Part shown: positions 1 through 24,181 of the stretch, piece after piece
Numbering within the stretch: position 1 is the stretch's first letter
Layout: every line of letters begins with the position of its first letter
Source: Bugula neritina
Lineage: Eukaryota > Animalia > Bryozoa
NCBI GenBank assembly: GCA_964035545.1
Contig: OZ037768.1
Coordinates: 23,593,319 to 23,657,318 of the forward strand
DNA: 64,000 bases
Direction: 5' to 3'
Program-made: the position numbers and the translations under genes
Notes under the pieces: model-generated
Told to the model about the DNA's origin: nothing
Seen by the model: only the letters and a program-made list of their open reading frames with translations
Database searches by the model: none

Positions 1-3000
1 CTCAGCCACCAGATGGGTAAGGAAATGTTTCAGTAGATATGATGTTGCTCGTGTAGCAGCTTTTGCTATACTGGTAGCTCCTTTAACTCATTTACTTCAG
101 TCTGACTACAGTACTGTAATTGTATATAATGCATCTCTACTATCTCAAAGTACCTGTTTATGTTTTATCTGGTTCCTGACCCTCAGGTTTAGCAGCAATT
201 GACAGAGTAATAATTCTACACTATTCAGTGGTACTCTAAATGATAAATATGATAATAATTATAGGAGAGTGTGTCAATCTGTGAAATAGCTAAGTTCACT
301 CTTTAATTAACCCAAGTATATAACTTTCTTCATAAATAATGCAACCGTATTATTGACCCATCGTGTGGAATTACTCAATCATCAAAGCCAGTAGTCAATA
401 AAAACCTTTTCACATCCAAAGCTAAGCAACCAGCTAGCACATTTTATCTATTCATTTGATTGAGGCTTTTCATGGAGTAAGTTAAAATTTAATTACTTTC
501 CACATGTTTGGATTCATATTCAAAAGAAGAATTTATCATAAATGCATGTTTTAATTTATATTAGATTACAAACCTGACAGTGTTGGCTGTTATAAACATT
601 TTGCAACTTTCACAAGACTCCTTCCTAAATGCTGATTTGACTGTCAACCAGTGAATGATCTACCTGAACAGAAAGTCAAACTGGTTCTAATCTTAATTCT
701 TTTTTTTTCAGCAATAGCTCAATTTAAACAATAAATTTAGCTGTTTTAGTCGCTTAGAAATTTCATACTGTTTTCAGCTGATCAAAACACAACCATGGTT
801 AGTTGAAGTTTCAATTTGATTTTATAAGAATAAGTTTATTTATAATTGCGAAAAGTCAATAAATAGTGTATTGAAGAGCCGTCAATGCAGTGACTGTAAC
901 CAGAGATAACTTCTGGCCGTGTCTTCTGCAGTTCTGAGCCCCAGTTGCCAAAGGAGATTTCCATGCTGACTGGCCTCACTTCACTGAGTCTCATTTACTG
1001 CAATGTTGGCAGTCTACCTGAGAGGTATGTATACGTGAGAGATTAGTCTAACAACAAGGTTTTTGTAATTGAATTTGTTTTATAATTTTTATCTAATAAG
1101 AGGTGTGGGTGACATTTAACAATCGGAATAATAGCTTCACCATTGTTGATAATCCGCATAATAAATTTCCATTAACAGCTTATTAGAACAAATTCAATAT
1201 GACTTCAGTTTCTTGGCAACTTATATCTCAAATTCAAAGTTTTAGGGATACTGAGTTTTAGAATTGTAGTGAAATTTTACGATAATAGTTTAGCGTGTGT
1301 TTTACCTAGAGTTGTCTTTTCAAATTTTATACTTATTTTCATAATAGCTTTATGATTTATGATCATATAAATCGATCCCGGCTGAAAATCAGAACATATT
1401 CCGATGTCTGTAAGCGCGACAATTTATCGGAATGACCGACAATTTGTTGGTGTGTTCGACTTTCGAATGTGACCGATAGAAGTTTCCAGAAGGGTTTTTG
1501 TCCCTGTATATAAAGAGGTGAGCTCACAGAGTAGATCAGTCTACCACTGGAGCTTGCAGGGTACAGACCTACCTATACACACTACTTTTCATACTACAAT
1601 AAAGATTCTTCTCTCAAGACTACAACTCTACCTGGTTTCTTCTATATTGGAGTTATGCTCCCCACTTAATTTCATTCTACCCACAAAACTACTACAGTAT
1701 TTAACCATTCAATCAACTTTTTGAAACTATTTTGTAGCGCAAGAGCTTTACAGAATCTGGAAGTGTTAGAGATTACTACGGATGATTTCTTTGCAAAATT
1801 TTCACCCGTGATATCAGAATTAAAGGCTTTGAAAGAATTAGACCTGGTAGCTCATGGAATATCCTCTCTTCCCATGAGGTAGTAACCTGATTAAAAAAGT
1901 CCTGCTTTAACTTTTATAAGATACTAACAGGACTTTAAATATCAGATTAGCCCATTGGTTTGATTTATCTGTAAAAAATTTTTGAATTACATAACTAAAT
2001 TTAAGTATTTTATGTTACCCAAGTATGTTTTTCATTTTATTAAATAATTTTGAGTGACTACATTACTTGAATTGACTACACAGAAACTAGCTCACAACGT
2101 GATGCCATGATTGGGCATTTCTCTCAAGTAAACATTTTCAGTTTATGATTGAATTTTCTTTATTTTATGTTATCTTGTATACCACTATTTTCAGCCTACA
2201 AAATCTTGAGCAGCTACACACACTACACTTCTTTTCTTTGGATTTTCGATCTGGTCTGCCAGAAGTTATTTCACATTTGCCATCTCTTAAACAGTTGGTG
2301 TTAAACAGATGTGGTCTTGCAGAACTTCCAATGAGGTAATAGTTTAACATCACCATGTTTTGATAATTTATTTGAAAAATATTCTGATCTATACTTGTTA
2401 CTAAAAAGGTCGTGTCCAACTGTTTGCCTTTCTCATGTTTTAGTTTGGAAAATTTGAAAAATCTAGAAATTCTCAACATTTTGGCAAATGATTTTCAAGG
2501 AAAACTCCCCTCTGTCGTTTTTACACTCGCCCAGTTACAAAAACTAAATGTTGGGAACAACATGCGTCTCACAGAGCTAGGAGCTGATCTGATGAAACTA
2601 AGCAAGCTCACAGAGTTGAAATGTGAAAATTGTTTCAATCTTGAGTTTCCAGACTATACTGTGTGCCAGCAGGGTATTGATGCCATCAAGAAGTTTTACA
2701 GGGACTGGGATACTGCAGCTGGCACAGGCGTGACTGTTCTACCAGTTGCTGTCGTTGGCAATACACTGGCTGGTAAAACCAGTCTTGTGTTGAGTTTGAA
2801 GGAAGAAAAGCAAGTCCTTACATTTCGTGATGAAACGTCGCCTTTGGATGAGACTACAAAAGTGTTTGATTTCCACAGTTTGAACCTATCAGATTCAATT
2901 GTCAGGTTCATTGATTTTGGTGGCCATGAAGTATATCATATGGCCTATCAGCTAACAATCAATAAGAATTGTGTCCCATTGGTTGTTGTTAATCTAGACG

Positions 3001-6000
3001 AATATCAAAAGTTGGCCAGTAGCCGAGGCGGCAGAGAGGCAACGAGAAGGTTGTGCTTGGATTGGCTGTCCCATTTCTATTTAGCATGTCCACATCTGGG
3101 TCCGCCAATTCTTGTGCTTTCTCACAAAGATCTTCTCTCAGATGTCGTGTTCGAGGAATGCAAAAGTCAGTTGCTTAGCTCAGCTGAAACTCTTCGAGTT
3201 GAGTTGCTTAAAGAAGAGAACAACATGTCTGAAGGCACAAGCGATTACTGCCGAATTGTTCATCTGTGTGATACCACTAAACCCTTGTTTCATCCAGATG
3301 ACATATTTGTTTTTGGTAATGAGCACGAAACAAAAGCCAGCATTCAAAGCCTCAGGCAATGCTTTAAAGGGCGCAGTAAGTTCAAAAGCCCTAACCCTAG
3401 GTTATGGGAACAAGTTGGTTCTTACTTGGAAGAACAACGATCTAAGCTGCTCATCTCCCTGTCTCAAATAAAGTCTAAGTTTCCCGATGAAAGTGGCATT
3501 GAAATCATTTTGAAAACTTTTCACAACAGTGGAAAGATTCTGTGGTTTGATCACCTATCAGATTTGCGCGAATATATTTTTCACCAAATACCAGCAATTG
3601 TAGAAATGATTGCTGTTCTTTTTCATCATGCTGGTGAAGAAAGATGGAAAAGTCGAGAAAATGATTTTGTTCCTTTTAAACATAAAAATCGCAATGTTGG
3701 GAAAATTGCCTACAAAGACATGGTGAAGAAATTTCTTGTGGAGGGTATTTTAAGTGAAGCTATTTTGGTAAATCTACTCAAACTAGAGACAGATTTTCCG
3801 GTTGACATGGCTTTGAAGCTACTTACCTCTTTTTGCATAATTCATGGGCCAATAACACAACAGGGCTGTGACGCTTTCATCCTGCCCTACTTTTCTAAGC
3901 AGTTCAAAGACCGAGAATGGAGAACTCATGGCTATCTGCAGCTTAGAGCAGATGTTGTGTTTGAGGGCCTTCCTCTGCCCAAATATGTCTACCAGTTGAT
4001 TACTGTAGCATTTTTGAATCATTTTTCAAACCCCACATATGCTTTGAAAGCCGCCAACAATGGAGCTACCGCTCAGTTTGGAGGATGCACTGCTCATCTG
4101 GTACACGATTGCTACACTAAAACTATCACCATTCAGGCCTCTACCCCTGTCGAAGCTGTCGGTAACTCATGGAGTATTTTGGTGCAGCTCCTAAAACTTA
4201 TTGTAAGACACACAACTAAAGTTTGGAAGGCATGTCGACCAGAAGTGTTAATCTACTGTTCCCACTGTCTCTTTATCAAAGCTGAAAATCCTGACTACCA
4301 CGTCACACCTTCCTGGTTTCAATCCCAATTAAATATGACAGACATGCCAGTGTTTAACCCACTTGAGCCTGTGGCCTGTGAAAATTCTAAACTCGATAGC
4401 AACGGGCAGTTGACTGTGCCCTCCATCCTTCGTTTCCCTTGTGAGTAGGTTACTTTATCATCTTGTACAACCAGATATTGAAATCATAAAACTAAAATAG
4501 GTTATAATATGAAATGCTTTTAACACACTCTGTTGCAGGAAGTTTGTGTCAGTTTCTTGGGTGTAATTTGTGAAATTATTTTCTTTGCCCAATTAGCTTG
4601 ATACTTTGTAGGCTATTGCTCGGAAGGAGATGAAGTATCAAGTCTAAAGAACTATCTCAGTGCCCTGGAGAACACTCTTCCATCCAAAACGAGTTAGTGT
4701 CAAACTATTGCCTGCTTTTCAGTGCTATGAGACACAAACTGCAATGTTTCCAGTATTATTAGTCATTAACTACAGTCTACTGGCATCTAGAATAGTTTTC
4801 TTAGTTTGGTTATACACACTTTGAGTTGTTGATACCAGGTTTCTGCAATTATTATTATATTGCATATTATCTAATTATTGGCAAGCTGCTTCGTTTTTTA
4901 TTCTCGCTTTCTTAGTCAATAATCCACTTGCCTTTTCTAGGCCTTCAAATAACTACTTTTCATTTATATTTCATAAGGTTCTACACCAACAAAAGCAGGT
5001 GAATATCCTGACCTTGATGATCAAGATGACCTCGAAAATGTTGACTGCACGCATGAGAATGAAGAAGAAAGTGACATCTCTGACATCGAGGAGGCGGGTT
5101 ATGCTGACTTTAATAAAGCTGACCTTGACCCTCATATCTGCAACTTGATGCAACTCCAGCCAACCAGGAAAAGGAATATCAAAAAGCTGTTTAACAACAA
5201 GAAGGCGGTAAAACTTTAAGTTATTATATTCCAACTTGGATTATTATATTCCTATATTCCGTGATATTCTTTGTTGATTGTGCCATGAAAACTTTCTATT
5301 ACTGGTAAAACTCCCCCCCCCCCAAAGTTCTCCCTGTATGCTGGATTTATTAGCTATTATCTACTGTACTACCATGCCAACCCCGCACGGTGTTTGTTTT
5401 TCCTCTACGCTTCTTTTTCTCTCAGGTGTACGAGATGAGTGACCCTGTTAGAGGTCGTGCGATGATCATAAACATTGAGAACTTTCGCAAAGATGGCCGA
5501 CACCGCCCGGAGCTGACAAGAAAAGGCTCTTATATCGACTATCAAAACATTCGCAGACTGTTTCAAGATATGACATTTGATATTGTAAAGAAGGACGAAG
5601 AGATGTCAGATCTGTGCAAAAACGTTTGTATCCAACATAGTAATAAATAGATGTATGATCAACACAACCAAACCAAGTTCTATTTTTATATTGATTTTTA
5701 ATAGAAAAACTGACTATAATTAAGCATGTTTGACCAGCAGTTTAGCTAATTTAAACTTTTGTAAAAACATGGATTAGCTGTAAAGCTGATTCTAAAGTTA
5801 ACTAAGAGCACACCAGTTAATAGCCTGTTAACTGTTAACACTGACTTTGGTTTCATTCACTCACAGGAGATACTAGCCGAGATTAAAAAGGAGACGGAGT
5901 TGTCCGTCCACAAGACCCTTGGGATGTTCGTCCTCGTCATCATGTCTCACGGCTCGGCCAATAACATCTTTTATGACAAAGACTGCGTACCTGTGAATAT

Positions 6001-7037
6001 TATGACTGAAGTGAAAGACTTGCTTTCGGCCAGTCGTTTTCCAGCTATGAGAGGAAAACCTAAGCTGATAATACTTCAGGCATGCTCAGGCAGTGAGTCA
6101 TCGTGTCTGTGTGTTGATGAGTCAGCTTTATACTATATGCTGCTTATATACTGGTATACTATATATATTTTGTATACTATCTACTGTTTAATATATAGTG
6201 TATACTACATACTGGTATACTGTATATATTATACTGTATACTATATACTGTATATTATATTCTGCTATACTGTATATTATGTACTGTTCCAGGTCAGGTT
6301 GATCTTGGTGGTGCCACGAGCAACACTCAAACTGCTTTGCCAACTTCTACCATCTCAAGTGATGACCCTAGCTCTGTTGACAGTGCAACGCCATCTGAAC
6401 CAATCATTCCCTCAGCTGGGCCAGTACCCTCAGCCAGGCCAGTACCCTCAGCTGGGCTAGTACCTTCAGCCGGGCCAGTACCCTCAGCTGGGCCAGTATC
6501 TCCAGCCGGGCCAGTTACAGATATTGACGTTAGCCGACTGGATTACCTGGATGTTGATGATTTCTACATCATGAAGTCAAGCACAGAATGTAAATATAGA
6601 TAGCTGTCTTTTATTAGATGTATACAAAACTTACGGTTGGTTAATATTTCACTAACTTCTTTCCTAAACTCACCTTTCCTCTCATTAAAGCATTCACAGC
6701 AGGGAGGGATGACTCATACGGCTCGTGGTTCATCAGAGTTCTGGTCGCAACTTTCTACAAACACAGCTGTCACAGGGACGTAGATCAGCTCTTTCTAATA
6801 GTGAGTCATTCTGTTCTCTTTTTACTACGGCCTGCTCTCATTGGTCAATTCCTTCTAACCAACAGTGTAATTGGTTGTGCATTGCTCTGGTAGATACAGG
6901 AGAGAGTTAGACAGGCGAGTATTGCGTACATGAAGAAGACTGGCTTAGCTGTTGGAGGAAATGTTCCTTCCAGACCAGACTGTACTTTCACTCATGGCAG
7001 GAAACTGCTCTTCTTCCCAAAGGTCAACGAAAAGTGA
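1..7037 (+). CDS. LRR-Roc-COR-caspase (ROCO GTPase fused to a C-terminal caspase); 5' end outside window
   Basis: Phase-compatible GT-AG exons: <1-16, 932-1024, 1738-1878, 2195-2335, 2444-4440, 4612-4692, 4978-5207, 5426-5623, 5867-6092, 6293-6589, 6691-6800, 6894-7037 (TGA). LRRs include LPKEISMLTGLTSLSLIYCNVGSLP and LQNLEQL...LPSLKQLVLNRCGLAELP. Roc motifs: GNTLAGKTS, FIDFGGHEVY, LSHKD. COR-like region: LKTFHNSGKILWF...YIFHQ. Caspase: YEMSDPVRGRAMIIN, RKGSYID, VIMSHG, KPKLIILQACSG; p10 GRDDSYGSWFI and RKLLFFP. Confidence 0.88.
6409..6515 (+). repeat. Coding 18-bp tandem repeat (PSAGPV) x~6 in the caspase inter-subunit linker
   Basis: ccctcagctgggccagta-like units; translation PSAGPVPSARPVPSAGLVPSAGPVPSAGPVSPAGPV. 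Confidence 0.9.
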
Positions 7038-7910: not shown

Positions 7911-8112
7911 GGTGTATATATTGTAAAGTGACACTGTTAGTGTATACATTTTAAAAGTGACACTGTTGGTGTATACATTGTAAAGTGACACTGTTGGTGT
8001 ATACATTGTAAAGTGACACTGTTAGTGTATACATTGTAAAGTGACACTGTTAGTGTATACATTGTAAAGTGACACTGTTAGTGTATACATTGTAAAGTGA
8101 CACTGTTGGTGT
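7911..8112. repeat. 28-bp minisatellite (probably in the 3' UTR of the Ihog/BOC-like gene)
   Basis: gtgtatacattgtaaagtgacactgtt(a/g) x~7; a minus-strand AATAAA lies at ~7768-7773. Confidence 0.9.
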
Positions 8113-8480
8113 AACCAGAGCACAGAAAGTTGGAAAGTAAAAACTACAGTCAGTTGAACAACGGACTGTATTATCACATATTGACGATTGACTGTATATA
8201 ATATACTTGTATATTATATAATATAATATAAAATACTAATATAGTTATATAATATACTAGTATACTATATAATATATAGTTATATAATATGCTTATATAA
8301 TATAGGTGTAACATGAATGAATAAAACAGGCTTTTATGTTTGATAAACTAGTTGTGGCGGGAGGGGAAGGGAGAGCACCAACATAATCCACCAGGATTGT
8401 AGGCTATAGTAAGTCATGTAATGCATAGTGCTGTTATAACAAGTTCTGCTGCAGATATCATCTAAAGCTATTTCTCTAGA

Positions 8481-11400
8481 TTACACTTGCTCATCCTTAT
8501 AGCCTAAGTCCCCGGTATTGGTGTCCATAGTGTTGGTGTTCAGTGGGTACGTCTCGTCACAATCCCCCTCCGCAGTGCTGGGTACACTGTGGCTATAACT
8601 TGAGGGTAGGACCGGAGGAGGGGGTAGCATCTGACTGTATTCCTCGGCACCCGTACCTTCTGCAACAAAGAGTATATGACTTACTATGAGCTCTACACTC
8701 TAACTATGAGCTCTACACTTTAGCTATGAGCTCTACTTTAGCTATGAGCTCTACACTCTAACTATGAGCTCTACACTCCCACTATGAGCTCTACACTCTT
8801 ACTATGAGCTCTACACTCCTACTATGAGCTCTACACTCTAACTATGAGCTCTACACTCTAACTATGAGCTCTACACACTAACTATGAGCTCTACAATCTA
8901 ACTATGAGTTCTACACTTTAACTATGAGCTCTACACACTAACTATGAGCTCTAGAAGAGGGGTGGGGGAAGAGAGAGAGTTGAGAGGGAGAAGATAGAAA
9001 GACTTACCGCCGCTGCTCAAGTCCGTGTTGGTGTTGTAGTCCCTCCCAGAGCCGGGGTTTGAGTGGCTCAACATCTGATCTCGCTGACTTCTCTTCTTCC
9101 TGCGTTTTCGCTGCTGATTGACTGGCGGGTGGTCACTGGGTGCAGGAGAGTGGCAGTGAGGGACGGGTCTCAGACCTTCCAGTAATAATATAGTAGTTAA
9201 TAATTATACAATAAGTCCTGTGTGCCAGACACCCCAGGGCAATGGGAGCTGCAAGAAAGCAGCTTGAAAAGGTATTTCAAATCCCACTGCAAAATAATTC
9301 AATAAACACATAAAATATTTTCAACTACGGCCGTGACCTTCAACTAACCTTGAGGATGCGGTAGTTTATTATAGTGAGTCGGAACAGGCGGGGCAGGGGA
9401 GCCTTCCTTCGTGGTTCTAGGTAGGAAGGTGCTGAACTGCGGGGTGTTGGAGCGAGACCTCTCGTACTGCTGGTGTACGTTGTAGTGTGGCAAGGAACCA
9501 TGGGAATAGTGATGACCATTGGCAGCGTCGTGCTGACTTCCGGCATCTAAAGCACACATAGACATAGAGAGTATATTATATACATGTGTACACATAGACA
9601 TAGAGAGTATATTATATATACATGTGTACACATAGACATAGAGAGTATATATATATACATGTGTACACATAGACATAGAGAGTATGATAGTATATATTAC
9701 CTATGACGCTGTGATGAGAGCTATGAGGATGCTGCTGAAAGGAAGAGGGGGCGTGTCTGCTGCCGTTACTATTATAGTGAGGGTAGTGCTGCATCAAATT
9801 GTAGTCCAAGTGTTTCGTGTCCTATAAACAGTGAAGTTTATAATCATATATAATATAGTGTGTATAGTATAACGTGTAGTGTGTATTATACCATCTAGTA
9901 CAGTGTATATTATAATATCGTAGAATGTATATTTTATTATAGAATACAGTGTATATAACGTATACTATTACACAGAATACAAGCAGGTAAAACATCCACC
10001 TGGTGGTTCTCATTGGCTGCATAACTTTCATCGAGTTCATTCAGTGGATTTATATTCAGACTGATTCTCTGGGAGTGAACGGAGGACAGGGTGCCGTTGG
10101 AAGGGGCGGACATTGGGCCCACCCCGCCATTCATTGTGACAAACTGCGTGGATCCGTTGACACTCGGCTGTTTCAGCTGCTCTCCGTACAGAACTTTGGA
10201 GGCGTCTGCAAACTTGTTGTGACTTCCTCTTCCTCTTGCTAACAATACAACGGGGAGACAATAGAAACAACACATCAGAATTGTCTTCTCTTACATTCTA
10301 TTAGAGAGAAGACAATTACATCAGCTGCTTGTACTCTAGCTGAATTATAAAGTTTTGAGAAATCTAACAGAGTATTGGGATTATTAGTCTACCCATGTAA
10401 GCATATAATGTCGAGTATGTAAACAACAATGTATGTACACTCAAGATATTTGTATTCTATGTTATCAATGCGGTCAAAAGAATACATCAATATTTCTACA
10501 GGCGAAAACATATAGTTCTAAACATATACACATATAATTCTACACGTGTGTAGATATACAATTCAACACATATAGATACAGCATGCTCACCCAACACAGT
10601 TCTGCGACGCTGCCGCTGCTTGAAGCCGCAGACGGCTACAAACACTATGAGTATGAGAATCATGAGACCGAGCACCGAGCCGAGAATTATGTAGAGAAGA
10701 TCGCTGTCGCTCGTCAAACCAAAGATGTTCTTATCTTTGTCAGCGTTGATGTATTTCTGGTCGCTATTAGTTCCTCTTGTATCTGATCCGGGGTTGTCTC
10801 CACTGACGAGAGTTGGGAGGGAGTAGTCTTCAGTGTTGTAGTTTGCTGAAAACACAAGGAAAGAGTTTACAGGAAGACAGAGTGAGTTTTAGCACACAAG
10901 GGAACTTCACAGTAGAAGTGGGTAAAGGAACATCATTTATTCTTTTATTTAGGAGAGAAGAAAAGAGAAATTAATGATACCGAGTTTTGTGAGAGATTAA
11001 TAAGTAAGGAGTTCAACCAAACAGGAAGTGATAAACTCGTCGTACCGGAGAGCGAGTGAGTGAGCACAAAGCTGGGAGGACTCTGACCGTACGAGTTCTC
11101 GGCCGTAACTCTCACTCCGTACTTCTCTCCCGGAGACAGACCAGTTATGGTGGCTTCCATCACAACGTAGGACGGCTCTGCTAGGACAGACAGCTGTGAC
11201 CACGTGACATCCGCCGGCATGTCCCACACCTTGTACTGTAACACAACACAATAAACTGAAGAGAATTTCAAATGTATGCAGACAATGTGACACGACTTTA
11301 GCACTCTCGTAATATTTTAAAATATTGATAACATAATTACAAGTGAACTGAATTGCGATATTATATGTAAAGGTTATATAATGTAACTTACATCTTTTAT

Positions 11401-12170
11401 AAGTACTATTTTGTGAATACAAGTGGAGATACTTGGTCTAGACGTGGAGTTAGTTAACATGAATGAGTAGCACTATGAGTGAGTTGCACTGTGAGTGAGT
11501 AGCACTATGAGTGAGTAGCACTGTGAGTGAGTAGCACTGTGAGTGAGTTGCACTGTGAGTGAGTTGCACTGTGAGTGAGTAGCACTGTGAGTGAGTAGCA
11601 CTATGAGTGAGTAGCACTGTGAGTGAGTAGCACTGTGAGTGAGTTGCACTGTGAGTGAGTTGCACTGTGAGTGAGTAGCACTGTGAGTGAGTAGCACTAT
11701 GAGTAAGTAGCACTGTGAGTGAGTTGCACTGTGAGTAAGTAGCACTGTGAGTGAGTTGCACTGTGAGTGAGTAGCACTGTGAGTGAGTAGCACTGTGAGA
11801 GTTAGTTAGAGTCAGAGAAAGTGCTAGACAGTGAAGTACCTCAACTATGTATCTCTCCACCAGCTCCTTCTTGCTGCTGGGCCACACCACCGTCAGCTGA
11901 GTGCGACCCGTCTGCACGACGGAGGACACGGCGGGAGGAAACTTGGGAGCTGATGAAACTGCAGCTTTGAGCAGTTTGACTTTCCGCGTGCTGGGGCTCA
12001 CTTCCACCTGATTGTCCACATAAACAGCACCTATTCTGAATCGGTAGATCCCACCTTCAACATAAGAGTAGTACTAGTAGTAACAGTAGTAGTACTGGTG
12101 GTAGTAGTAGTAGTAGTAGTACTAGTAGTAGCAGTATTAGTAGTGGTGGTGGTGGTAGTGGTAGTAGTAC

Positions 12171-12205
<35 letters not shown>

Positions 12206-12234
12206 ATAGTAGTACTAGTAGTAACAGTAGTAGT

Positions 12235-12269
<35 letters not shown>

Positions 12270-15200
12270 CTAGTAGTGGTAGCAGTAGTTAGTAGTAACA
12301 GTAGTAACAGTAGTAGTACTAGTGGTAGTAGTACTAGTGGTAGTAGTGGTGGTGGTAGTAGTACTAGTACTAGTAGTAGTAGTACCTGCAGAGAGACCAG
12401 CTAGTCTGTACTCATTTGTCTGCATAGAATCAACCCGCAGAGTGAACCACTTTGACCAGCCATCTGGATCCAGTCTCTTGTACTGTACTTTATACATAAC
12501 GACAGGCACACCCCCTGATACAGGGGTGTAAGTTATTCTTACTTCAGTAGAAGATATGACCTCCACCACTGGCATGGTTGGGGCGACTATAGCTATAAGA
12601 AGTGTAAGTGTATTACTCATGATATGTATTATATATACAGTAATATATCATATGATACTCATGATATGTATTATATATACAGTAATATATCATATGATAC
12701 TCATGATATGTATTATATATACAGTAATATATCATATGATACTCATGATATGTATTATATATACAGTAATATATCATATGATACTCATGATATGTATTAT
12801 ATATACAGTAATATATCATATGATACTCATGATATGTATTATATATACAGTAATATATCATATGATACTCATGATATGTATTATATATACAGTAATATAT
12901 CATATGATATCTGCTGTATATAACCAAATAAACAAACTGATTCAATAGTCAGCAAATCATTAGCTCAACATCAGTAGTATCTATACACATGGAAAACTTC
13001 CCACCAGTGATCAGTTTCCATGGTGACAATATTACTCAATGACAGGAACAAAACTTCAGAGCTATCCTACTTATGTTTTATAATGTTTGTAACCAAGTTA
13101 TCCTTCCAGTTCAACTTCATAATGTCTCAAATTGAAACTTCAATCCGTTAGTTACGCACTTTGACTAGCTACATTATAAATACAGTATAAATATAAACTA
13201 GATGTTAGCATGAGGCATGCATCTACCTGTTATAACGGGTACGTAACTACAAAGCAACTAAATACTACCAACTATAAGTATAAGTGCTACTAGCTCCGAG
13301 TTTTGTCACAGTATAGGTGCTGGGGGCAAAACATTTCTATGGGGCAACAGATTTGAGGGGCGATATGACAATAAATGCTGTCTGTAAATCTTTGAGTTTT
13401 CAATTCAAATAGTAGTCACTTACTTTTGGAAGGCGTAGTTGTAGTTGAAGTCACGAGTATACTATTAGGGGACGTTGGTGATGGGGTTCGCTCTGAAAGC
13501 AAATGGACATGCCAAGAACATTAGTCTATTAATAAAGTCGCAAGGTGAGATATACAGGCAAGGAAAAGGCTAATACTACTCTACGTTGATAAAGCCTTAG
13601 AAAGTCCACTACAAAAACTAGTCCATGTAAAGATAAGACAAAATGTTACATGGTTTTTAGTCTGTAGCATTATGAAGGATAAAGCTGGTTATTCAGGAAA
13701 AAGAGAGTGAGGCATCTTTGTTAGAGTTTTGCATGAAAACCAAAATTAAATTACACAAACGTGTTTATAAATTCAAACTCAAACAGAGATCCCAATTCAC
13801 GTGGATTTCTGTTAGGAAAAATATTTCAGGTGAAAGTAGAGTAAGTGTGCTTTTATTTTTAATATCCATATGAAACTTTATACTACTCACTGCAAAAAAA
13901 GAATCATTCTGAAAAAGATTCTTTTTTACAAAAAGAGTGGTGGTCATAAGATGAAAAAATTACCTTGCTCAAACAGGTTAGTTGGAGTGACAACAGCTAT
14001 AGCACTACACAATACACAACTTTACTTTCACCTGCACACAGGTTTGACGTGAGAGAAATAGAAAACAGTGCATCAAACAGATGAGTTGGTAGCATTTTAT
14101 TGTTTGATTAGTTACAAAGAGCCAGCACCAAGAGAGTAGCTAGGGGTTACTATACAAGCAAGGCTACCTATTGCGGGCGGGCTGGAGAGGACCCTCAAAT
14201 AGGCAGTCGAGTTTGTGGATCCGTACTGATTAGCAACTTGACAGCTATACCATCCGGTATCAGCTGGTGTCAGCTGCATGATCACTAAGATGTTCATTTG
14301 GATGAGCCGGCGGGCGGGTACTGCACTCAGCTGGACGCCGTCTTTATACCATCCGTACTCGGCATCGTGATCGTTGACTATACACATGAGTCTAACATCG
14401 CTGCCAGAGCTACGAGTGGCATTCTCTAGCCCAGTGATGACTGCTGGAGGCCGACACTGATTGACACACACAGGTGCTTGCAAAGTGGCTGTTAGTTGCG
14501 TGACAGCAGCAGCGGGTGGTTGGGAAGCAGAAGACAGTGAGACAGCTAACAGTAGAGAACAGCAGCATGTGACAGTAGCATGTGACAGCAGCACTAGCTA
14601 AAACTCATCTCCCTATTGTACATTGTTAGCAGCTATTATATAATGCTACAGAAATTTTAAATGTGAAAATTTGCACTTCTAAAAAGCTATCAAAAACAAG
14701 TCAATGTTAAAAGGTGCATATTGTGGAATAAGACAGGGTGGGATAGAAACACTAATCAGTATTTAGTACAGTGAGATGGTTAAAACATTCATTTGCTATA
14801 AGTCTCGGAGATTTATTGTTACAAAAAGCAAACAGTAGGAAATGTTAGTATAATAAATAGCGGACAACTCCAGTGTGTAGCCAGGGTTAGAAGAGACAGG
14901 GAAAGACAACTACTGTACAGACAAGCAACAGCTGATATATAACTGCAGCAACTACATACAAAGGGTGTAAGCAGATACCTGTAATTGGGGTTGTCTCCTC
15001 ATCGCCAAAGGTTGGATCCAGGCGAAATCTAACACTAGGGGGACTGTCTACTTGTATGTTGTTACGATACAGCGCCACTATGATGAACTTGTACTTTTGA
15101 CCTGATGAGATGATGTAGTTTAATCAAACATAGCAATATAATACATATAATATAATATACATGTATATAATATAATATATACATGGTAATATATATAATA

Positions 15201-18200
15201 CAATACATATAATATAACATATACAATATAATATAATATATACATGGTAATATATATAATACAATACATATAATATAACATATACAATATAATATAATAT
15301 ATACATGGTAATATAATATATATAATATAATACATATAATATAACATATACAATATAATATAATATAATATATGCAATGTAATATAGTAACATATCAAAT
15401 CATATTATATAACACAGTATAAGAAGTGCATACAGTAGACTAATATTAGCATGCAGTATACAAGAAATAGAAATATAGTCACAACTGCCAAACTGTTTAT
15501 ATCTTGCATATCATCTTCAGCTAACTGTCCTCACAGCAGCAGAGAATGGGGTTTCTAACTTTTCCTAACAAGAGTTGCCGTCTTTGGAATAGTAGTTGAA
15601 CTGTTTACCTGCCACGAGGTCGTTGTTGACCTCCACGGAGCTGGTCTGCCTGGGTATGTCTCTCAACACAACCAGCCAATCATCTCCTGCGGTCTTCGCC
15701 TTCACCCAATAGGAGAGCACATTACTTAACCCCTGAGTAGACCAGGTAAGTTTGACTCCTTCCCTCCTGATCTGCTCCACGGAAGGCTGGCCAGGAGCCG
15801 GTTGGGCCGCAGTGACGGCTACACGAGAGTAAGAGTAGAAACACGAGGGTTAGACATTTACATGAGAATTCTTAAAACTCCAAGCCTAAAACTACTCGAC
15901 TTTGATTCAATGGCATCTCTTAGATCTTTAGAAGACTTAAGATTTACTGATCGCATTTTATACTCTTTAAATATATTCCTAGAAATGGCAAGACAAAACA
16001 TATAACTTTACACAATGCCTTAACTAAATATAACGTGGACATTAATCACCAGATAATATCATACAGAATAAACTCTGTAAACATTGCACGATATGAAAGG
16101 AATAGGGCAGAGTTGAGTTGCCAAATGAGGGGCAACTCCAAAGAGAATACAACTCCTGAGTGAAATACTACATCTACAGCTGCGTACCAGAAGCAGACGT
16201 GGTGACTACAGGAGCAGACGTGGTGGTGGTGGTTGTGGACGTGGTAGTAGTCGTCGTCGTGGGTTCCTTAACAACGTGCAGCTTCACATAACCGCTGTCG
16301 GAGCCGACATCATTACCCACAATGCACTGGTACAGCCCGGCAGCATCCGAGGTGAGGTTTGATATCGTCAGCGAACCTGGTAAACAACCAAATCACACTT
16401 AGTCATGGGAGTTATTCAGTGTACTGGAAAACAGTTTACAGGGTCTGGGAATTATCTTCTCACTGCAAACTGACGAGTAAATATTGCACAGCAAACAGTG
16501 TATTACAGCATTGCTAACTAAAATGTGCTGTTGCAATGACTAAACCGTGGAGATCGGAAGCACAAATCGGCAAAATTGAAATGCAACGAATAAGGTATCC
16601 AAATCCAGCGCATCATAAAATCGTCTCAAAGCTGAGTTTCAGGTTGGAGATTGCTAGTTTTTCAATTTATTTTTCAAAAAATGATCAAATTGAGATTTAA
16701 TTACATGTACATAGGATATGTATATTGTGGAGACTGGCATTATGTTTAGTGAGAGTGGAAGTGAGAAGCTAAGCTACAGCAGGGTGAGCACACAGTTTCA
16801 ACCTCAGCATGTGCCGGACATGTGTGTAGGCTTAAACAGTAACTAATATATTGCATAACATGGCTGATAGTCATTTATCAATTTAACATTTCCTGTTCGC
16901 TGATAAACTTGAGGAAAACATCTAAAACTGCTAGCAGACACCATCTGTCTACATTCTGTAGGATCCATGAGGAACTAGAGTGGGAGGAGCTAGAATGGGA
17001 GGAGCTAGAATGGGAGGAGCTATTATTTTGTACAAAGAGACAGAAATTAAAAGTGAATACAAAGTTCAAAGATTAGAGGTGAGAAATGAGGCTGCCGAGT
17101 GTTATAGCTTGAGGCAGCGCAAATAGGTGAACAGCAGGGGCCTCCACTACCCTCAACACTGACTGTGAGTAATTAATCTAGAGCTGATATGCAGTTATGG
17201 ACTCAAGTGTTTGCTCTTAATTAGTATCTAGTATAACATTATTGATCAGCCCCCAGCTTCAACTCAATTCTGATTCACTCTCATCCAGCTGAGTGCAGCC
17301 GATTTTAGGTGCTGCCTCAATTAAGGTGTTGTTACACACCAAACTTAGGGGCCTCAATTAAGGTGTTGTTACACACCAAACTTAGGGGCCTCAATTAAGG
17401 TGTTGCTACATGCCAAACTTAGCAAACTATATATAAGAGACTTTAGTGTACAATAGAGGAGTTGTCCTCACTCCTCACACAGAACTGTCCGTAAAGTAGC
17501 TGGTGAACCGACAGTTATATTCTGCTCAAATGACTTCATTTCTATTGAACAGGAAGACCCTTTGCCTGTGCATAAAGCGCTGCAGTTAATCACTACTCAA
17601 ATTTAATTGGTCAGCTATAAAAAACGAACCGAGAAATGTCTTGCAAATTACCTACTAGGCTTTTCTTCTGAAATGTTTATAGCATTTCTTTCCCAAAATA
17701 ATAAGAAATGCATATATTTTTACTGCAGAATACACCCAGTGTGCCGGCAGGTGCTATAAATCTACTGCAGATTCACTCACCCTCGTAATGCTGCAGATCT
17801 TCCCCGTTGAAGTACCACTGATACTCTACGTCTGCAGCTGAGTCGTTCTGCAGAGAACACTCAATCTCCGTAGACCGAAATTCTACGGCATGTTTTATGG
17901 AGCTTCTCGGGGAAACCTTAGGCTTAGCTAAAACATATCGGCATTTGTGTGAAGGAATTGTACAACTCGGGCCAAAACATGGAATTCATAACAGGAAATA
18001 TAGAGAGAACATAACTCATAGCAAATATATTAACTAACAAAGAAATTAATACTTTCATACAATAAAACATCAACTGAGAAAACTAAACTTATTATCATTA
18101 ATATATTAATTTATTATCATTAATATATTAATTTATTATTATTAATATATTAATTTATTATTATTAATATATTAATTTATTATTATTAATATATTAATTT

Positions 18201-21200
18201 ATTATTATTAATATATTAATTCATTATTATTGAAATTATTTTGGAAAAACAAACATCCCATAATGTAAAAACAAACACAGATGTGATAACACAAATGGGA
18301 CCTACAGCTGTACTTACAGTAAACACTCAAAAGGTAAGTAATGGTGGTGGGAATGTTTCCATTCTCTATGATACAGTTGTAAGTTCCCTGATCTGTTGGT
18401 TGTATGTTACTAATACGCAGGGCATCTGTAATACACAGTGACTTAGTGTGATGTGAAATTCAACAAGAAAAATATACAAACAAACACACACATGTATTAC
18501 ACATAGTACACACACTACACATGTGCATCTACAGTAAATATATACACAACACTGCACACCACACTGTCTGCCAACTACCACACTGTCTGTTAACTACCAC
18601 ACTGTCTGCCAACTACCACACTGTCTGCTAGCTACCATACTGTCTGCTGCACTCACCGCCCACGTAGGAGGTCCTATTGAGCGGAAGCTCTTGCTGGTAT
18701 CTCTCCCAGCTAGTGGAGCCCAGCGGGTTGGCTCTGTACACGCAGGGCAGCACCAGGGTGTCCCCTTCCATCGCTGTCACCTGGGGGCCAAGAGACCAGC
18801 TGATTGGTTCGGGTGAGACCGGTGTCTGGGGAGCCACTACAATATATATTACATTCTCTTACACTGTGTTACACTTGAATACTAGTCACAGTAACTCACC
18901 TACTACTACTAGAGTCACAGTGACTCACACTTGACTACTAGTTACAGTGACTCACACTCTATTACTAGTCACAGTGACTCACCTTGTACCAGTAGTCACA
19001 GTACCTCACCTACTACGACTAGTTATAGTAACTCACCTTCTACTACTAGAGTTATAGTGACTCACCTTGTACTACTAGAGTTATAGTGAAAGGTGCTGGA
19101 ACTTTATCATTCAGCACACTGTTGATGGCCACACATTTATAAGCTCCAGCGTGTTCCTGTTGAACATTGGATATCTGCAGATCTCCGGAACTTAGCAAGT
19201 AGTGATTACCTGCAGAACAGAGAGAATATCTACAGAACAGAGAGATTATCTGCAGAACAGAGAGAATATCTGCAGAACAGAGAATATCTGCAGAACAGAG
19301 AGATTACCTACAGAACAGAGAGACTACCTGCAGAACATAAAGGTGACTAGCTGACTAGCTACTATATTTAGCATATTTGTTGTCAGCTGAAGTATCGCCC
19401 TGACACGTTTCAATTTCCAAATATGAAGGTCACTTATAGAATAAAATGATCTTTATAATATACTACTGTCTATATAACACTGTCTATATAACACTGTCTA
19501 TATAATACTGTCTATATACTACTGTCTATATAATACTGTCTATATACTACTGTCTATATATTATATAATACTACACAAAAAAGAGATTTATACATTAGTG
19601 GGGAAATAATTCCCAGCTTTTTCTTAGCAGAAAATATTTTTTACTAATTCCTATGAATAAATGAACTAATGATAATATAACGTGTTTCTATAAGCTCCAA
19701 TAACTGCCCCCCCCTCTCCCTCTACCACCACTACACTGCTCTAAGTCAACATGATGGGTAGATAAAAATTGATTTTATTAGTTGAACAACATCTTGACAA
19801 TGGCAAAGTCAAATAGCATAAAGAAAGCATACAATTTCACCTGTCACACTCTATTAGAAGAGTATTTATGTATTAACAGTATAAAACCTTTCCCCACAAA
19901 AAGAAAGCTAACCGACTATCAAAATATCATTCAAGAACCAACTCTGACTAATAAGATCTGAAAAAGATAGACCAGGATGGTTTCTGCAAGACATAACAGT
20001 TAATTAAGTGAGTATAACCCATGGGATAAGAATATGTGAGTGAATTATTATTCGCTCCTACATAAGCTGACATAACAGCACATCGAAGGCTGACTAACGC
20101 AAACCAGCCGTGTGACAGAGTGCTCAAAGCCGACATTTATTTGTTCAACTGGATTGAGTTTTAAAACAATGACAATAAATTATCTTCTAACAATAGAGTA
20201 TGGGAAGCCGTGAGTTCATTTAATATTTTGGATTTGTTTGGAGGTGAATAGAAGAATAATATTTACAGTTATGCTGTGATTGGGTATTGTTTTACGTGGT
20301 AGAGTATTGGTAGGACGGCATTTGCACCTCAGGGGTATTCAACAAGTGGCTGAGTTAAATGTTCAGTTTAAAGGTGAATCAGTGCAATTTTGTAGTAGTA
20401 TATTACAGTATATAGTACATACAGTGTGTATATTACAGTATATAGTACATACAGTGTGTATATTACAGTATGTAGTACATATAGTGTGTATATTACAGTA
20501 CATAGTACATATAGTGTGTATATTACAGTATATACAGTGTGTATATTACAGTATATAGTACATACAGTGTGTATATTACAGTATGTAGTACATATAGTGT
20601 GTATATTACAGTATGTAATACATATAGTGTGTATATTACAGTATATACAGTGTGTATATTACAGTATATAGTACATATAGTGTGTATATTACAGTATATA
20701 TAGTGTGTATATTACAGTATATAGTACATATAGTGTGTATATTACAGTATATAGTACATATAGTGTGTTTATTAGATGATGTGAAGAGGCAGCACCCACT
20801 AGAGCTGAGCTACTCTAGTAATGCAAGTGACAGCAAGGACTAGAGAGTGACAGCAAGGACTAGAGAGTGACAGCAAGGACTAGAGAGAGACAGCAAGGAC
20901 AAGAGAGTGACAGCAAGGACTAGAGAGAGACAGCAAGGACTAGAGAGAGACAGCAAGGACTAGAGAGTGACAGCAAGGACTAGAGAGTGACAGCAAGGAC
21001 TAGAGAGAGACAGCTGTATTGGGTAGAGTGGTGACCTGGGGGGATAATTGCTACTACAACGAGCTCATTACTTTGTTTACTACAACTTCTAACAGCTTCC
21101 TGTTGCATTCACAAATAACTACAGGATACATCACTGGAAAGTGCCACTGATGTCTAACACACTATAAAACTGACCTCTAGACTCGTCTATAGTTTGGCCA

Positions 21201-23577
21201 TTGATCTCAAAGACCGTGTGGGCCGTAGGTCTACTGGCAGGCGGCTGGCAGGGTATGAGGGCGGTGGCGCCCTCTATCACAGTTATAGTCTGGTCTTTCA
21301 GAGTTGACGAGAATGGCTTGATCTCTACAAGAAAATACAAGAATCAAAAACTTTTATTCAAAGTATTTGATACAAGCTTTAGAGAGCAGAAACTCTGAAA
21401 ACTAGATCCTTGCAGACGTCAACTTAGCTATGTTAGTTACAGACGACTTTGAGAGACAAAGCAGTCCATCGATGCAAACTCTACTGAGTCACGAATTTAC
21501 AAATTATCTCAAAACTCAGACTTGCACAAAATTTTTCAAAAGAAACTGAAGCTCTTTTAGACTCAGAACAATGAACATTATGAGGAATTTATTGTGGAGG
21601 TGTTGCTGGACTCCCTCTTGGATAACTTGAGAGCTGTGAAGAATCAAGTCTTTGCTCAATTTATTAAAAAGCGAATATTTATCTGATAAAAGGATAAATA
21701 GTTGAAAAAATTTAGAGACAAACAGACAGACAATTTCACTCACTCGCTTTTGTCAGTACGAACACTTGACTGACGAGCTGGTGTCTCACGCACTGCCAGG
21801 ACCCGGTGTGAGACGTCCTCACAGCTGGTATGCGGAGGCCACCAGTGGAATTGATTACCACTCTGTCTTTTGGGTCGACAGAGACTGTGGGTACAACTTG
21901 GCCATCCTTTAGCCATGTGACCGGAGTGTCGTACTGATCGTCTCCGGGATTACAGTACAGTTCTACTACAGATTTCAGTTTAACTACTCCATTTGCTGTG
22001 TTGGAGGTTATTGTTGGCGGATCTACAAAAAATATTATTATCAGAGACTTGGGAAGATTTTAGCGTTTTTCTGATGTCATTGGCTTTGATGATGGTGAAC
22101 TGGCAATTCTCACAGTCAACTGCCCTTTGAAACTGCACTACTTGGTTAAATAGTCTAATAATGAGAAATGAATAACTTTTTAGCAGAAAAAATTATTACA
22201 GCTCAATAATTCCATCACTCAGTCTCACTCACTAATCACTCTGTCTCACTCTCTACTCACTCAGTCTCACTCTCTACTCACTCAGTCACACTCTCTCTTT
22301 CATTTACTAAGTTGCTCTAGATGTGTTCCTGTAAAATGATTTTATCTGCTGTATTTTATGCACATTTAAAGGGAATACACTGCTCTAGTAGTTCCGGTAG
22401 TAACCATTCAGAAGAATTTATCATCTCATTAATACATAATATCATCACCAAAAGATATCCTGCTAAAGGAAATAGGAACTCCACAATTTCATAAGAATTT
22501 AGGAATAAATTTAGATACAGTGGCTTCTGTCTCACTTTGAATACCCTTAAACTAAGTTAGCAGGGTGGTTTGGGACGGGATCTACAATAGGCCTAGCACC
22601 CACACCACCAGAGTTCTCTCAGGGGGGGGGGGGTGTGTGAGTGGATCCTCAAATAACAGGCAACATAACCCAAAACCTCAAGTCCTGTATCAGACTGCAG
22701 AGGAGGGGGGGGGGTAAGGGCGTTTGGCTGACCAGCGTTTAGAGACAAATGCTAAGATGATCTCTGGATAATCACTGCTTACAGTAGACTGTTGAGGTAG
22801 AGACATCCAATATTTTTAGGGTCTCAATGTTTGTAGAAGAATAATTAATTCACAGCCTTCTGACCACTTCAAACAGCCCCGAGTATTCAGTTACCTTTTA
22901 GTAATTATATCTAAATAACTGGTAACCTCTGCTCAAGGAAAGCAACCAGCAACTGGCAATCAGCAATTAGCAACTGGCAACTAAAACTTAAGGTATGCAT
23001 TCTTGTTTCATTCATAAATGGCTTTCCAAATTAAAGTTTTTACACCCTTTAGTTTTTTGTATTACAGAGATAAATCTACAACCTTCCATATACACTAAAA
23101 CCTGGTTACATATTACTACATAAACACATATGTTTATATATAATGAAATATATAATATCACAGCATATATAAACATCACTACATAATACATACTGCTACA
23201 TATAAAATACTATATACATGCATGTTCAATAAAACCCACATGACCCACATACAATATGTTATTTCCATTATTAGTCCATTATTTGTATTTCCAAATTACT
23301 ATTTAGTATACAACTGGCTGTTGCAATTCCATGAGTCATGGAGACTGCAAAACAGCTGAAAAACGGATACAAAAGCCTGTCACAAACAGTGAAGCAGAGA
23401 CAAAGCCAAATTAAATGTAAAACCAGTGGAAAACAAAAGTAATGCTGGTACAAAACCCTGCCTTGTACTGTTTGTGTTTGTCCTGATAAAATATCTACTA
23501 ATTCATTCTACTGTTACTAGCCAAGTACTAATATTACCACTATATTACTACTAATACTGCTAATACTGCTAATACTG

Positions 23578-23622
<45 letters not shown>

Positions 23623-23780
23623 TTACTGCTACTACTACTACTACTGCTACTACTACTACTACTAGTACTACTAATACTACAACTGATGCTGTCAGGCAGC
23701 AGTGACTCACCAGGTAGAGACTGTTCCCCACTGACCAGAGCTACACACAGAAGAAGTAGGGAGAACTCTCTCTGATACAT
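8481..23780 (-). CDS. Ihog/Boi/BOC/CDON-family Hedgehog co-receptor (signal-Ig4-FN3-Ig-FN3-FN3-TM-cytoplasmic tail)
   Basis: 21 coding exons: 23780-23711 (MYQREFSLLLLCVALVSG signal), 22022-21744, 21324-21175, 19209-19066, 18836-18657, 18425-18318, 17927-17781, 16376-16188, 15818-15609, 15101-14979, 14545-14168, 13492-13424, 12592-12386, 12054-11840, 11235-11046, 10845-10591, 10238-10000, 9821-9701, 9546-9349, 9175-9008, 8659-8481 (TAA). Ig motifs ALIPCQPPASRP, GDLQISNV, GLYQCIVGNDVG. The FN3 segment YRFRIGAVY and juxtamembrane SDLLYIILGSVLG resemble Ihog/BOC/CDON. Confidence 0.82.
8682..8953. repeat. 20-bp intronic minisatellite
   Basis: actatgagctctacactcta x~13. Confidence 0.95.
9553..9684. 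repeat. ~36-40-bp intronic tandem repeat filling a short intron
   Basis: cacatagacatagagagtatattatatacatgtgta x~3.5. Confidence 0.85.
11463..11798. repeat. 16-bp intronic minisatellite
   Basis: gagtgagt(a/t)gcact(g/a)t x~21. Confidence 0.95.
12067..12384. repeat. (TAG/CTA)n trinucleotide microsatellite filling an intron
   Basis: Degenerate gtagtagta runs between the exons ending at 12054 and starting at 12386. Confidence 0.95.
12614..12908. repeat. ~42-bp near-perfect intronic minisatellite
   Basis: tactcatgatatgtattatatatacagtaatatatcatatga x7. Confidence 0.95.
15134..15400. repeat. AT-rich intronic tandem repeat
   Basis: Repeats of atataatacatataatataacatatacaatataatataatatatacatggta-like units. 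Confidence 0.85.
17315..17422. repeat. 37-bp tandem triplication
   Basis: cctcaattaaggtgttgttacacaccaaacttagggg starting at 17315, 17352 and 17389. Confidence 0.9.
18880..19089. repeat. Minisatellite derived from an exon 3' end plus donor site
   Basis: Units such as gtgactcaccttgtactactagagttata copy the end of exon 19209-19066 and its GTGAGT donor. Confidence 0.8.
19204..19338. repeat. 20-bp minisatellite derived from an acceptor site plus exon start
   Basis: ctgcagaacagagagattac-like units (minus strand: tctctgttctgcag|gtaatc). Confidence 0.85.
20396..20768. repeat. ~30-bp intronic minisatellite
   Basis: tattacagtatatagtacatatagtgtgta repeats. Confidence 0.95.
20827..21014. repeat. 20-bp intronic minisatellite
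   Basis: cagcaaggactagagag(t/a)ga x~9. Confidence 0.95.
23525..23690. repeat. (ACT)n microsatellite immediately after the signal-peptide exon donor
   Basis: actactact runs. Confidence 0.9.
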
Positions 23781-23873
23781 AACGTGGCAGCTTTTCTCTC
23801 GTCTAGCAGCACTCACTCATTTCCTGTAACTAGAACAGCAGAGTACTACTACAGTTAGATTTATTGAGACTCA

Positions 23874-24181
23874 CTGAGAGTTACTGAGAGTTACTAGTTA
23901 GAGTTACTGAGAGTTACTAGTTAGAGTTACTGAGAGTTACTAGTTAGAGTTACAGAGAGTTACTAGTTAGAGTTACTGAGAGTTACTAGTTAGAGTTACT
24001 GAGAGTTACTAGTTAGAGTTACTGAGAGTTACTAGTTAGAGTTACTGAGAGTTACTAGTTAGAGTTACTGAGAGTTACTAGTTAGAGTTACTGAGAGTTA
24101 CTAGTTAGAGTTACTGAGAGTTACTAGTTAGAGTTACTGAGAGTTACTAGTTAGAGTTACTGAGAGTTACTAGTTAGAGTT
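23874..24181. repeat. 23-bp minisatellite
   Basis: gagttactgagagttactagtta x~13. Confidence 0.95.

Follow-up and report, generated by a model that had tools for sequence, protein, structure and literature searches.

Does one gene of the bryozoan Bugula neritina encode, in a single chain, both a leucine-rich repeat (LRR)-Roc-COR protein of the ROCO family and a caspase, and how might such a protein be switched? The question is raised by a stretch of 64,000 nucleotides (nt) of contig OZ037768.1 (assembly GCA_964035545.1, positions 23,593,319 to 23,657,318, forward strand), hereafter the window. An earlier note, made from the sequence alone, had read an LRR-Roc-COR open reading frame (ORF) in it as being spliced into downstream caspase exons, and had proposed a GTP-gated receptor of an architecture unfamiliar among characterised animal proteins. 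In this study, we find that a single spliced message encodes the LRRs, the Roc-COR part, an acidic tether of about 104 amino acids (aa) and a complete caspase. The product would be a cytosolic, adaptor-free receptor of innate immunity or cell death, belonging to a bryozoan ROCO expansion, a reading to which we give slightly better than an even chance.

One spliced message from the LRRs to the caspase

The gene model is a chain of 11 exons on the plus strand (932-7037; Table 1) with AG acceptors and GT donors throughout, open over 1218 aa and with its sole stop at the end. The joined exon protein served for the frame check, local alignment and codon mapping; database searches and folding used single exons or natural proteins. 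In the 678-aa LRR-Roc-COR ORF, the first 32 nt are intron. At its other end, the GTGAGT donor at 4441 reported in the earlier note was confirmed in the sequence; it splits the last Cys codon in phase 1, and the apparent stop ends 8 nt downstream.

Evidence at the transcript level comes from RNA contigs of four runs, each from a different study; one run is recorded as RNA-Seq, and all contigs are spliced and were hence taken as RNA. They are 93-98% identical to the window and thus represent a different strain or a paralogue that is nearly identical. The three joints that the earlier note had named for a check, 4440/4612 (2 runs), 4692/4978 (2 runs) and 5207/5426 (4 runs), were all seen, together with 2335/2444, 5623/5867, 6092/6293, 6589/6691 and 6800/6894. 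Support for 1024/1738 and 1878/2195 consists of loose contig ends matching the upstream exon only. A single contig of 2315 nt (X5 record 8) spans 2798 to 6050, from Roc into the exon of the catalytic His, in blocks at 2798-4442, 4996-5206, 5425-5623 and 5867-6050, with 76 nt between the first two that fit the 4612 exon. An alternative in-frame acceptor at 4999 (joint 4692/4999) shortens the tether by 7 aa; it was found in three of the four runs, and one run contained both forms. The gene is expressed in all four studies sampled.

That the ROCO gene ends at 4448 and is followed by an independent caspase gene, the fusion being an artefact of annotation, is very improbable. Three Watersipora models (P0012, P0013, P0016) stop short of the caspase, and RNA depth is greater across the first caspase exon, both of which could speak for two genes. 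However, the spliced contig that bridges Roc to the caspase rules out a separate caspase gene for the near-identical transcript, and the surplus depth is accompanied by loose contig ends at 5424 and 5474-5480, which point to more paralogues with related caspase exons. The model P0012, the one checked, continues into intron sequence, with a caspase exon 9.3 kb downstream that is 97% like that of a paralogue; the idea that 'caspase-less' Watersipora paralogues reflect an optional fusion was dropped. Moreover, among 68 homologue ORFs of one exon on environmental contigs, about 45 close with PC[K/E], the mark left when the same phase-1 donor is read through. The RNA contigs are compatible with additional short transcripts.

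The 5' end of the gene very probably lies left of the window, and the model has no start codon. At least one further upstream exon is indicated, because an RNA contig extends 231 nt past 1736, of which exon 932-1024 accounts for 93. Positions 1-16 of the window may be the end of an upstream LRR exon, with a phase-2 donor (GTAAGG at 17) as candidate partner of exon 932. Exon-wise tblastn found no second copy of the gene in the window.

Table 1. Exons, motifs and coding repeat of the LRR-Roc-COR-caspase gene, in window coordinates
Feature	Position	Strand	Evidence or remark
LRR exon, first in model, no ATG	932..1024	+	Loose RNA contig end before 1736 matches exon
Two-LRR exon, 141 nt, phase 2-2	1738..1878	+	RNA coverage in bin 1650-1838
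Two-LRR exon, 141 nt, phase 2-2	2195..2335	+	Joint 2335/2444 in 4 runs
1997-nt exon: last three LRRs, LRR-Roc hinge, Roc, COR-A, COR-B (predicted)	2444..4440	+	AlphaFold model and structural alignment
Roc G1/P-loop GNTLAGKTS	2757..2783	+	Lys in 91 of 92 family rows
Roc G2/switch I DETTKVF, conserved second Thr	2847..2867	+	Thr in 90 of 92
Roc G3/switch II DFGGH	2913..2927	+	Sequence motif
Roc G4 SHKD (family THxD)	3120..3131	+	Sequence motif
COR-B end with CxHC...C...(P)C, probable four-Cys metal site	4257..4440	+	Invariant Cys; metal binding inferred
Linker exon 1, 81 nt, phase 1-1	4612..4692	+	Joints 4440/4612, 4692/4978 or 4692/4999
Linker exon 2, acidic, basic stretch ahead of caspase	4978..5207	+	RNA joints
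Tether motif SD[ILV]SDxExEGY	5067..5102	+	
Caspase large-subunit exon 1	5426..5623	+	Pfam C14 E 3e-5; joint 5207/5426 in all 4 runs
S1 Arg (caspase-1 R179 equivalent)	5516..5530	+	
Caspase large-subunit exon 2	5867..6092	+	Pfam C14 E 6e-10; RNA joints
Catalytic His motif VIMSHG	5936..5953	+	
Catalytic Cys motif QACSG	6077..6091	+	
Intersubunit linker and first strand of small subunit	6293..6589	+	RNA joints
Coding 18-bp tandem repeat x5.9 (PSAGPV-like)	6409..6515	+	In intersubunit linker
Caspase small-subunit exon, with GSWF	6691..6800	+	72-75% identity to Watersipora p10; CED-3 alignment through P0007; RNA joints
S1 Arg (R341 equivalent)	6699..6713	+	In small-subunit exon
Last exon: small-subunit dimer strand and stop	6894..7037	+	Frame check, RNA joint

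Domains of the predicted protein and its bryozoan relatives

The AlphaFold (AF2) model of the 1997-nt exon reached a predicted local distance difference test score (pLDDT) of 87 and a predicted template modelling score (pTM) of 0.83. Because this model can be aligned over its whole length to LRRK2 1241-1857 (Z 23.1, root mean square deviation 4.7, 525 aligned) and to CtRoco 345-934 (Z 22.2), the exon is assigned by modelled fold to LRR-Roc-COR-A-COR-B, which puts the caspase in the slot of the LRRK2 kinase. Pfam matches on LRR, Roc and COR-A are weak and below cut-off (Roc E 3e-4, 21.6 bits against a cut-off of 27; COR-A E 0.025); a Csa3 match on an LRR exon, likewise below cut-off, was treated as noise. 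The best PDB sequence matches of the Roc are to the LRRK2 Roc. G1 to G4 are all present in the window gene, in line with the earlier reading of a Roc GTPase, and G1, G3 and G4 are intact in 83 of the 91 scorable family members. With such a Roc and with COR-A and COR-B directly C-terminal to it, the protein belongs to the ROCO family; by its fold and by its motifs, the switch domain is a Ras-like GTPase and not a STAND ATPase (NACHT/NB-ARC). The invariant Cys residues at the end of COR-B probably form a metal site.

Judged by its residues, the protease is a member of the caspase family (C14A) with intact catalytic and Asp-pocket positions. Pfam Peptidase_C14 is above cut-off on both large-subunit exons, and the alignment of the window gene with Watersipora P0007 and CED-3 gives an Arg/Gln/Arg S1 pocket for Asp at P1 as well as large and small subunits separated by a linker. 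This linker comprises about 88 aa, is rich in Pro and Ser and contains several Asp; the 18-bp repeat within it appears variable in length, since RNA contigs show indels at 6496-6502. P0007, a natural protein, stood in for whole-length folding. Its full-length model matches the CtRoco fold at E 7.6e-23 and scores below a pLDDT of 50 at both the tether and the intersubunit linker, and the closest solved relatives of its caspase are CED-3 and caspase-9. No death fold (CARD, DED or DD) was found between COR and caspase in the window gene, where the linker is acidic. The earlier description of an initiator-like (CED-3/caspase-9-like) caspase without CARD or DED thus agrees with what we find, and the predicted product is neither a classical initiator caspase nor an NLR.

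The nearest named relatives are bryozoan, namely Watersipora subatra P0007, P0045-P0054 and the partial P0067 and P0084, and Bugula neritina P0025, P0116, P0194 and P0218. They carry Roc-COR (partial in some models), linker and caspase in the same order, and at least 11 Watersipora clusters were found. Their identity to the window is 28-44% over Roc-COR and 42-75% over the caspase exons, within an overall family identity of 27-45%. QACSG is found in most of them, as is the linker motif; LRR numbers differ between them, and the set includes truncated models and ones with an eroded P-loop. The tether motif is kept in an otherwise variable linker across Watersipora and the window, and is absent from P0053, P0084, P0218 and the amphioxus proteins discussed below. 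In the databases these models are named 'MFHAS1 homolog', 'CASP8' or 'uncharacterized', and the fusion was missed. In Watersipora P0053 the LRR-Roc-COR-caspase order is followed by six fibronectin-III domains, possibly through a merged gene model.

Compared with the RNA strain, the LRR exons show 6.4-6.8% differences and Roc-COR 2.9-3.1% (Fisher p 0.0004-0.002, three runs). Concave-face LRR positions, which make up 21% of codons, account for 7 of 12 listed amino-acid changes (enrichment p 0.005) and for 1 of 10 silent changes (Fisher 0.03 between the two). This suggests a fast-evolving, receptor-like concave face.

Elsewhere in the window, a multi-exon gene at about 9300-24000 on the minus strand encodes Ig I-set and fibronectin-III domains, a transmembrane helix and a cytoplasmic tail, and presumably resembles Ihog/CDON/BOC. 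A histone deacetylase gene lies at about 57500-63900 on the plus strand; it is HDAC6/10-like in that it apparently encodes two deacetylase domains, and one of its exons matches Pfam Hist_deacetyl at E 4e-25. Minisatellites of 28 bp (7912-8113) and 20 bp (8683-8953) follow downstream of the ROCO-caspase gene; such arrays are common in introns of the window.

A proposed dimerisation switch and its alternatives

The protein probably works like a one-chain apoptosome. The concave LRR face would bind a variable ligand, probably microbial or damage-derived, and binding would shift the nucleotide and oligomer cycle of Roc-COR. Dimerisation through COR-B would then bring two tethered initiator-type caspases close enough to dimerise, and these would cut their own Asp-containing intersubunit linker and perhaps release themselves at the acidic tether motif. 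Once freed, the caspases could cleave Asp substrates such as effector caspases, gasdermin-like proteins or cytokines. The resting, OFF state would be a GTP-bound monomer and the ON state a hydrolysis-linked, GDP-bound or empty dimer, driven by ligand or membrane. Initiator caspases are activated by proximity-driven dimerisation (PMC5123071), and COR-B is the Roco dimer interface, with a proposed LRRK2 cycle of hydrolysis and dimerisation at the membrane (PMC6337361); on these two grounds, a tethered CED-3/caspase-9-like protease could be switched by the oligomer state of Roc-COR without any adaptor. We lean with some confidence towards such a dimerisation-activated receptor and, given that, consider the GTP-off sign fairly likely. 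GTP-off is the simplest reading because CtRoco, the Roco protein with such measurements in the literature consulted, is a dimer when empty or GDP-bound and a monomer with GTP (PMC5714945, PMC11052575). The 'GTP-gated dimerisation' of the earlier note finds no support as worded, since in CtRoco GTP gives the monomer and two relatives with a caspase have eroded P-loops; its sign may be wrong.

Several observations weigh against this dimerisation switch. The flexible 104-aa tether makes tight allosteric control harder and carries a risk of leaky activation. The candidate G5 position reads [IV][FY]E[FVI][GS] across the family, without a clear SA/CA motif. In B. neritina P0218 (EB796_003546) and Watersipora P0054 the P-loop is eroded and the His/Cys dyad intact, so that GTP binding is not needed in every member. 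The substitution test on the LRRs, for its part, draws on a listed subset of differences and on one strain or paralogue pair.

The nucleotide could act with the opposite sign. A resting GDP-bound or empty dimer, or a closed LRR conformation, would then restrain the caspase, and GTP would open the LRR hinge and allow dimerisation of the caspases in trans or within a higher oligomer. With GTP bound, CtRoco is an open, 'active' monomer in which the LRR-Roc hinge has moved by a large amount (PMC11052575), and the switch residues are conserved across the family. However, a GTP-bound monomer would keep the tethered caspases apart, contrary to induced proximity, and the long disordered tether gives a resting dimer little means of restraint; we regard a GTP-on switch as unlikely. 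Clustering independent of nucleotide, brought about by a multivalent ligand or a membrane via the LRRs, would reduce Roc-COR to a scaffold or localisation module. It is consistent with the eroded P-loops and intact caspases of P0218 and P0054 and with the existence of TNFR-caspase and RLR-caspase fusions without a GTPase, but G1, G3 and G4 have been kept in the great majority of members at only 27-45% overall identity, which makes this reading, in our view, quite unlikely.

The tether might also serve as a tripwire or guard, in that its acidic motif would be cut by a host caspase or a pathogen protease, or phosphorylated, whereupon the caspase would be freed or activated; LRR-Roc-COR would be an inhibitory prodomain. 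Such a role would fit the conservation of the motif within a variable, disordered linker, yet the motif is missing from three bryozoan relatives and from the amphioxus proteins, and such a role would not account for how fast the LRR face changes; we consider it improbable. Caspases are developmental executors, and bryozoans recycle their polypides. A developmental function with an endogenous trigger, for instance in colonies during the programmed regression of polypides or in cell death at metamorphosis, would accord with the expression in every RNA study sampled. However, a family expanded to many copies, with tandem paralogues and LRR faces that change fast, is typical of pathogen receptors, and a primarily developmental function has little probability.

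Precedents and related systems

A search with the Roc-COR exon reached BRAFLDRAFT_67388 (C3XQ16) of Branchiostoma floridae, an LRR-Roc-COR-A-COR-B-caspase protein with all domains over the Pfam cut-off. From its caspase, at least 12 such clusters were found, all named Branchiostoma (B. floridae, B. belcheri, B. lanceolatum). For amphioxus, 'LRRs-caspase' hybrids with intact QACxG have been described and proposed to couple the recognition of pathogens directly to apoptosis, in a text that does not name Roc-COR (Zhang et al. 2008, PMC2575513); these models may be the Branchiostoma LRR-Roc-COR-caspase genes. The amphioxus and bryozoan proteins share the domain order and a caspase-9-like protease, but differ in several respects: they are about 21-32% identical in Roc-COR patches, the spacer from CxHC to the caspase is 69 aa without the acidic motif in amphioxus and 109-152 aa in bryozoans, and the caspase motif is QACRG in the former and QACSG in the latter. 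In quick Roc-COR trees of limited sampling, bryozoan and amphioxus sequences form separate starred clades (Shimodaira-Hasegawa-like approximate likelihood ratio test, SH-aLRT, 100 each), the amphioxus set lies near caspase-less deuterostome ROCOs, and the bacterial rows form a starred clade of their own with the bryozoan rows outside; the approximately unbiased (AU) test does not reject a joint bryozoan-amphioxus clade (p-AU 0.196). Because the spacers differ and identity is low, independent fusion in the two lineages is favoured, not shown.

Two observations were made beside this search. By precomputed Pfam annotation, Branchiostoma belcheri P0209, P0203 and P0212 have glycosyltransferase-4 and/or death domains besides COR and caspase, which may reflect real shuffling or merged models. 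P0215 (L002 217-2967, an ENA contig) is one ORF in which a pannexin-like/LRRC8-type membrane domain and LRRs are joined to a caspase that has SHG and QACRG, and would be another channel- or receptor-caspase fusion.

Bacterial proteins with LRRs, an AP-GTPase and COR carry at least 24 alternative C-terminal effectors, the same slot holding caspase, TIR or trypsin, and are predicted counter-invader systems (Kaur et al. 2021, PMC8195603). Fast-evolving LRRs, Roc (the AP-GTPase), COR, a variable C-terminal effector and multiple copies are common to both; in contrast, the bryozoan protease is a metazoan caspase with p20/p10 and an intersubunit linker, and its gene has 10 or more introns. The novelty that the earlier note had suggested for the architecture finds no support as worded, given the family in three Branchiostoma species, the bacterial version (PMC8195603) and the amphioxus 'LRRs-caspase' proteins (PMC2575513). 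Its reading of a single-chain LRR-Roc-COR-caspase agrees with what we find. The design is known in bacteria and partly in amphioxus; for bryozoans it is undescribed in the literature searched. That search, with most subscription papers outside its reach, found no paper on the bryozoan family, no experiment on any ROCO-caspase and no anti-phage test of a Roco. Matches in the ESM Atlas were confined to clusters of MFHAS1-like and of bacterial Roco proteins, under 0.9, with no caspase-bearing cluster of 50 or more members.

These findings point to a class of intracellular animal receptors, in at least two phyla, that would bypass death-fold adaptors and STAND ATPases, and that database labels such as 'MFHAS1 homolog' or 'CASP8' hide. 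As a tentative and somewhat doubtful proposition, bryozoans may have independently built and expanded one-chain immune receptors in which the Roc-COR cycle switches a caspase by dimerisation, in convergence with amphioxus and bacteria. If true, this would be the first animal equivalent of an apoptosome or inflammasome run by a Roco GTPase. The nucleotide cycle of Roc-COR (monomer or dimer, GTP-on or GTP-off) is still debated for LRRK2, and a caspase activated by dimerisation would be a built-in reporter of it, its protease activity being readable against GDP, GTP analogues and interface mutants.

Among known ROCO proteins, MFHAS1/MASL1, LRRK1/2, DAPK1 and CtRoco share the LRR-Roc-COR core, but end in a kinase, a death domain or nothing where the bryozoan protein ends in a caspase; MFHAS1/MASL1 is set apart by the lack of an enzymatic C-terminal domain, whereas here a spliced caspase follows COR. 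ROCO expansions have likewise been proposed as immune receptors in brown algae, where group 3 has a C-terminal peptidase (PMC11378527), and in Aplysia, with ROCO-TIR proteins (PMC9334734); these proteins have a trypsin-like peptidase (IPR009003) or TIR as their effector and not a caspase. In its proposed logic, the bryozoan protein resembles the Apaf-1/caspase-9 apoptosome, CED-4/CED-3 and the NLR inflammasomes, in which a repeat sensor, a nucleotide switch and a proximity-activated initiator caspase work together. It differs from them in that a Roc-COR small GTPase takes the place of the STAND ATPase, CARD, DED and PYD are absent, and sensor and protease are united in one chain.

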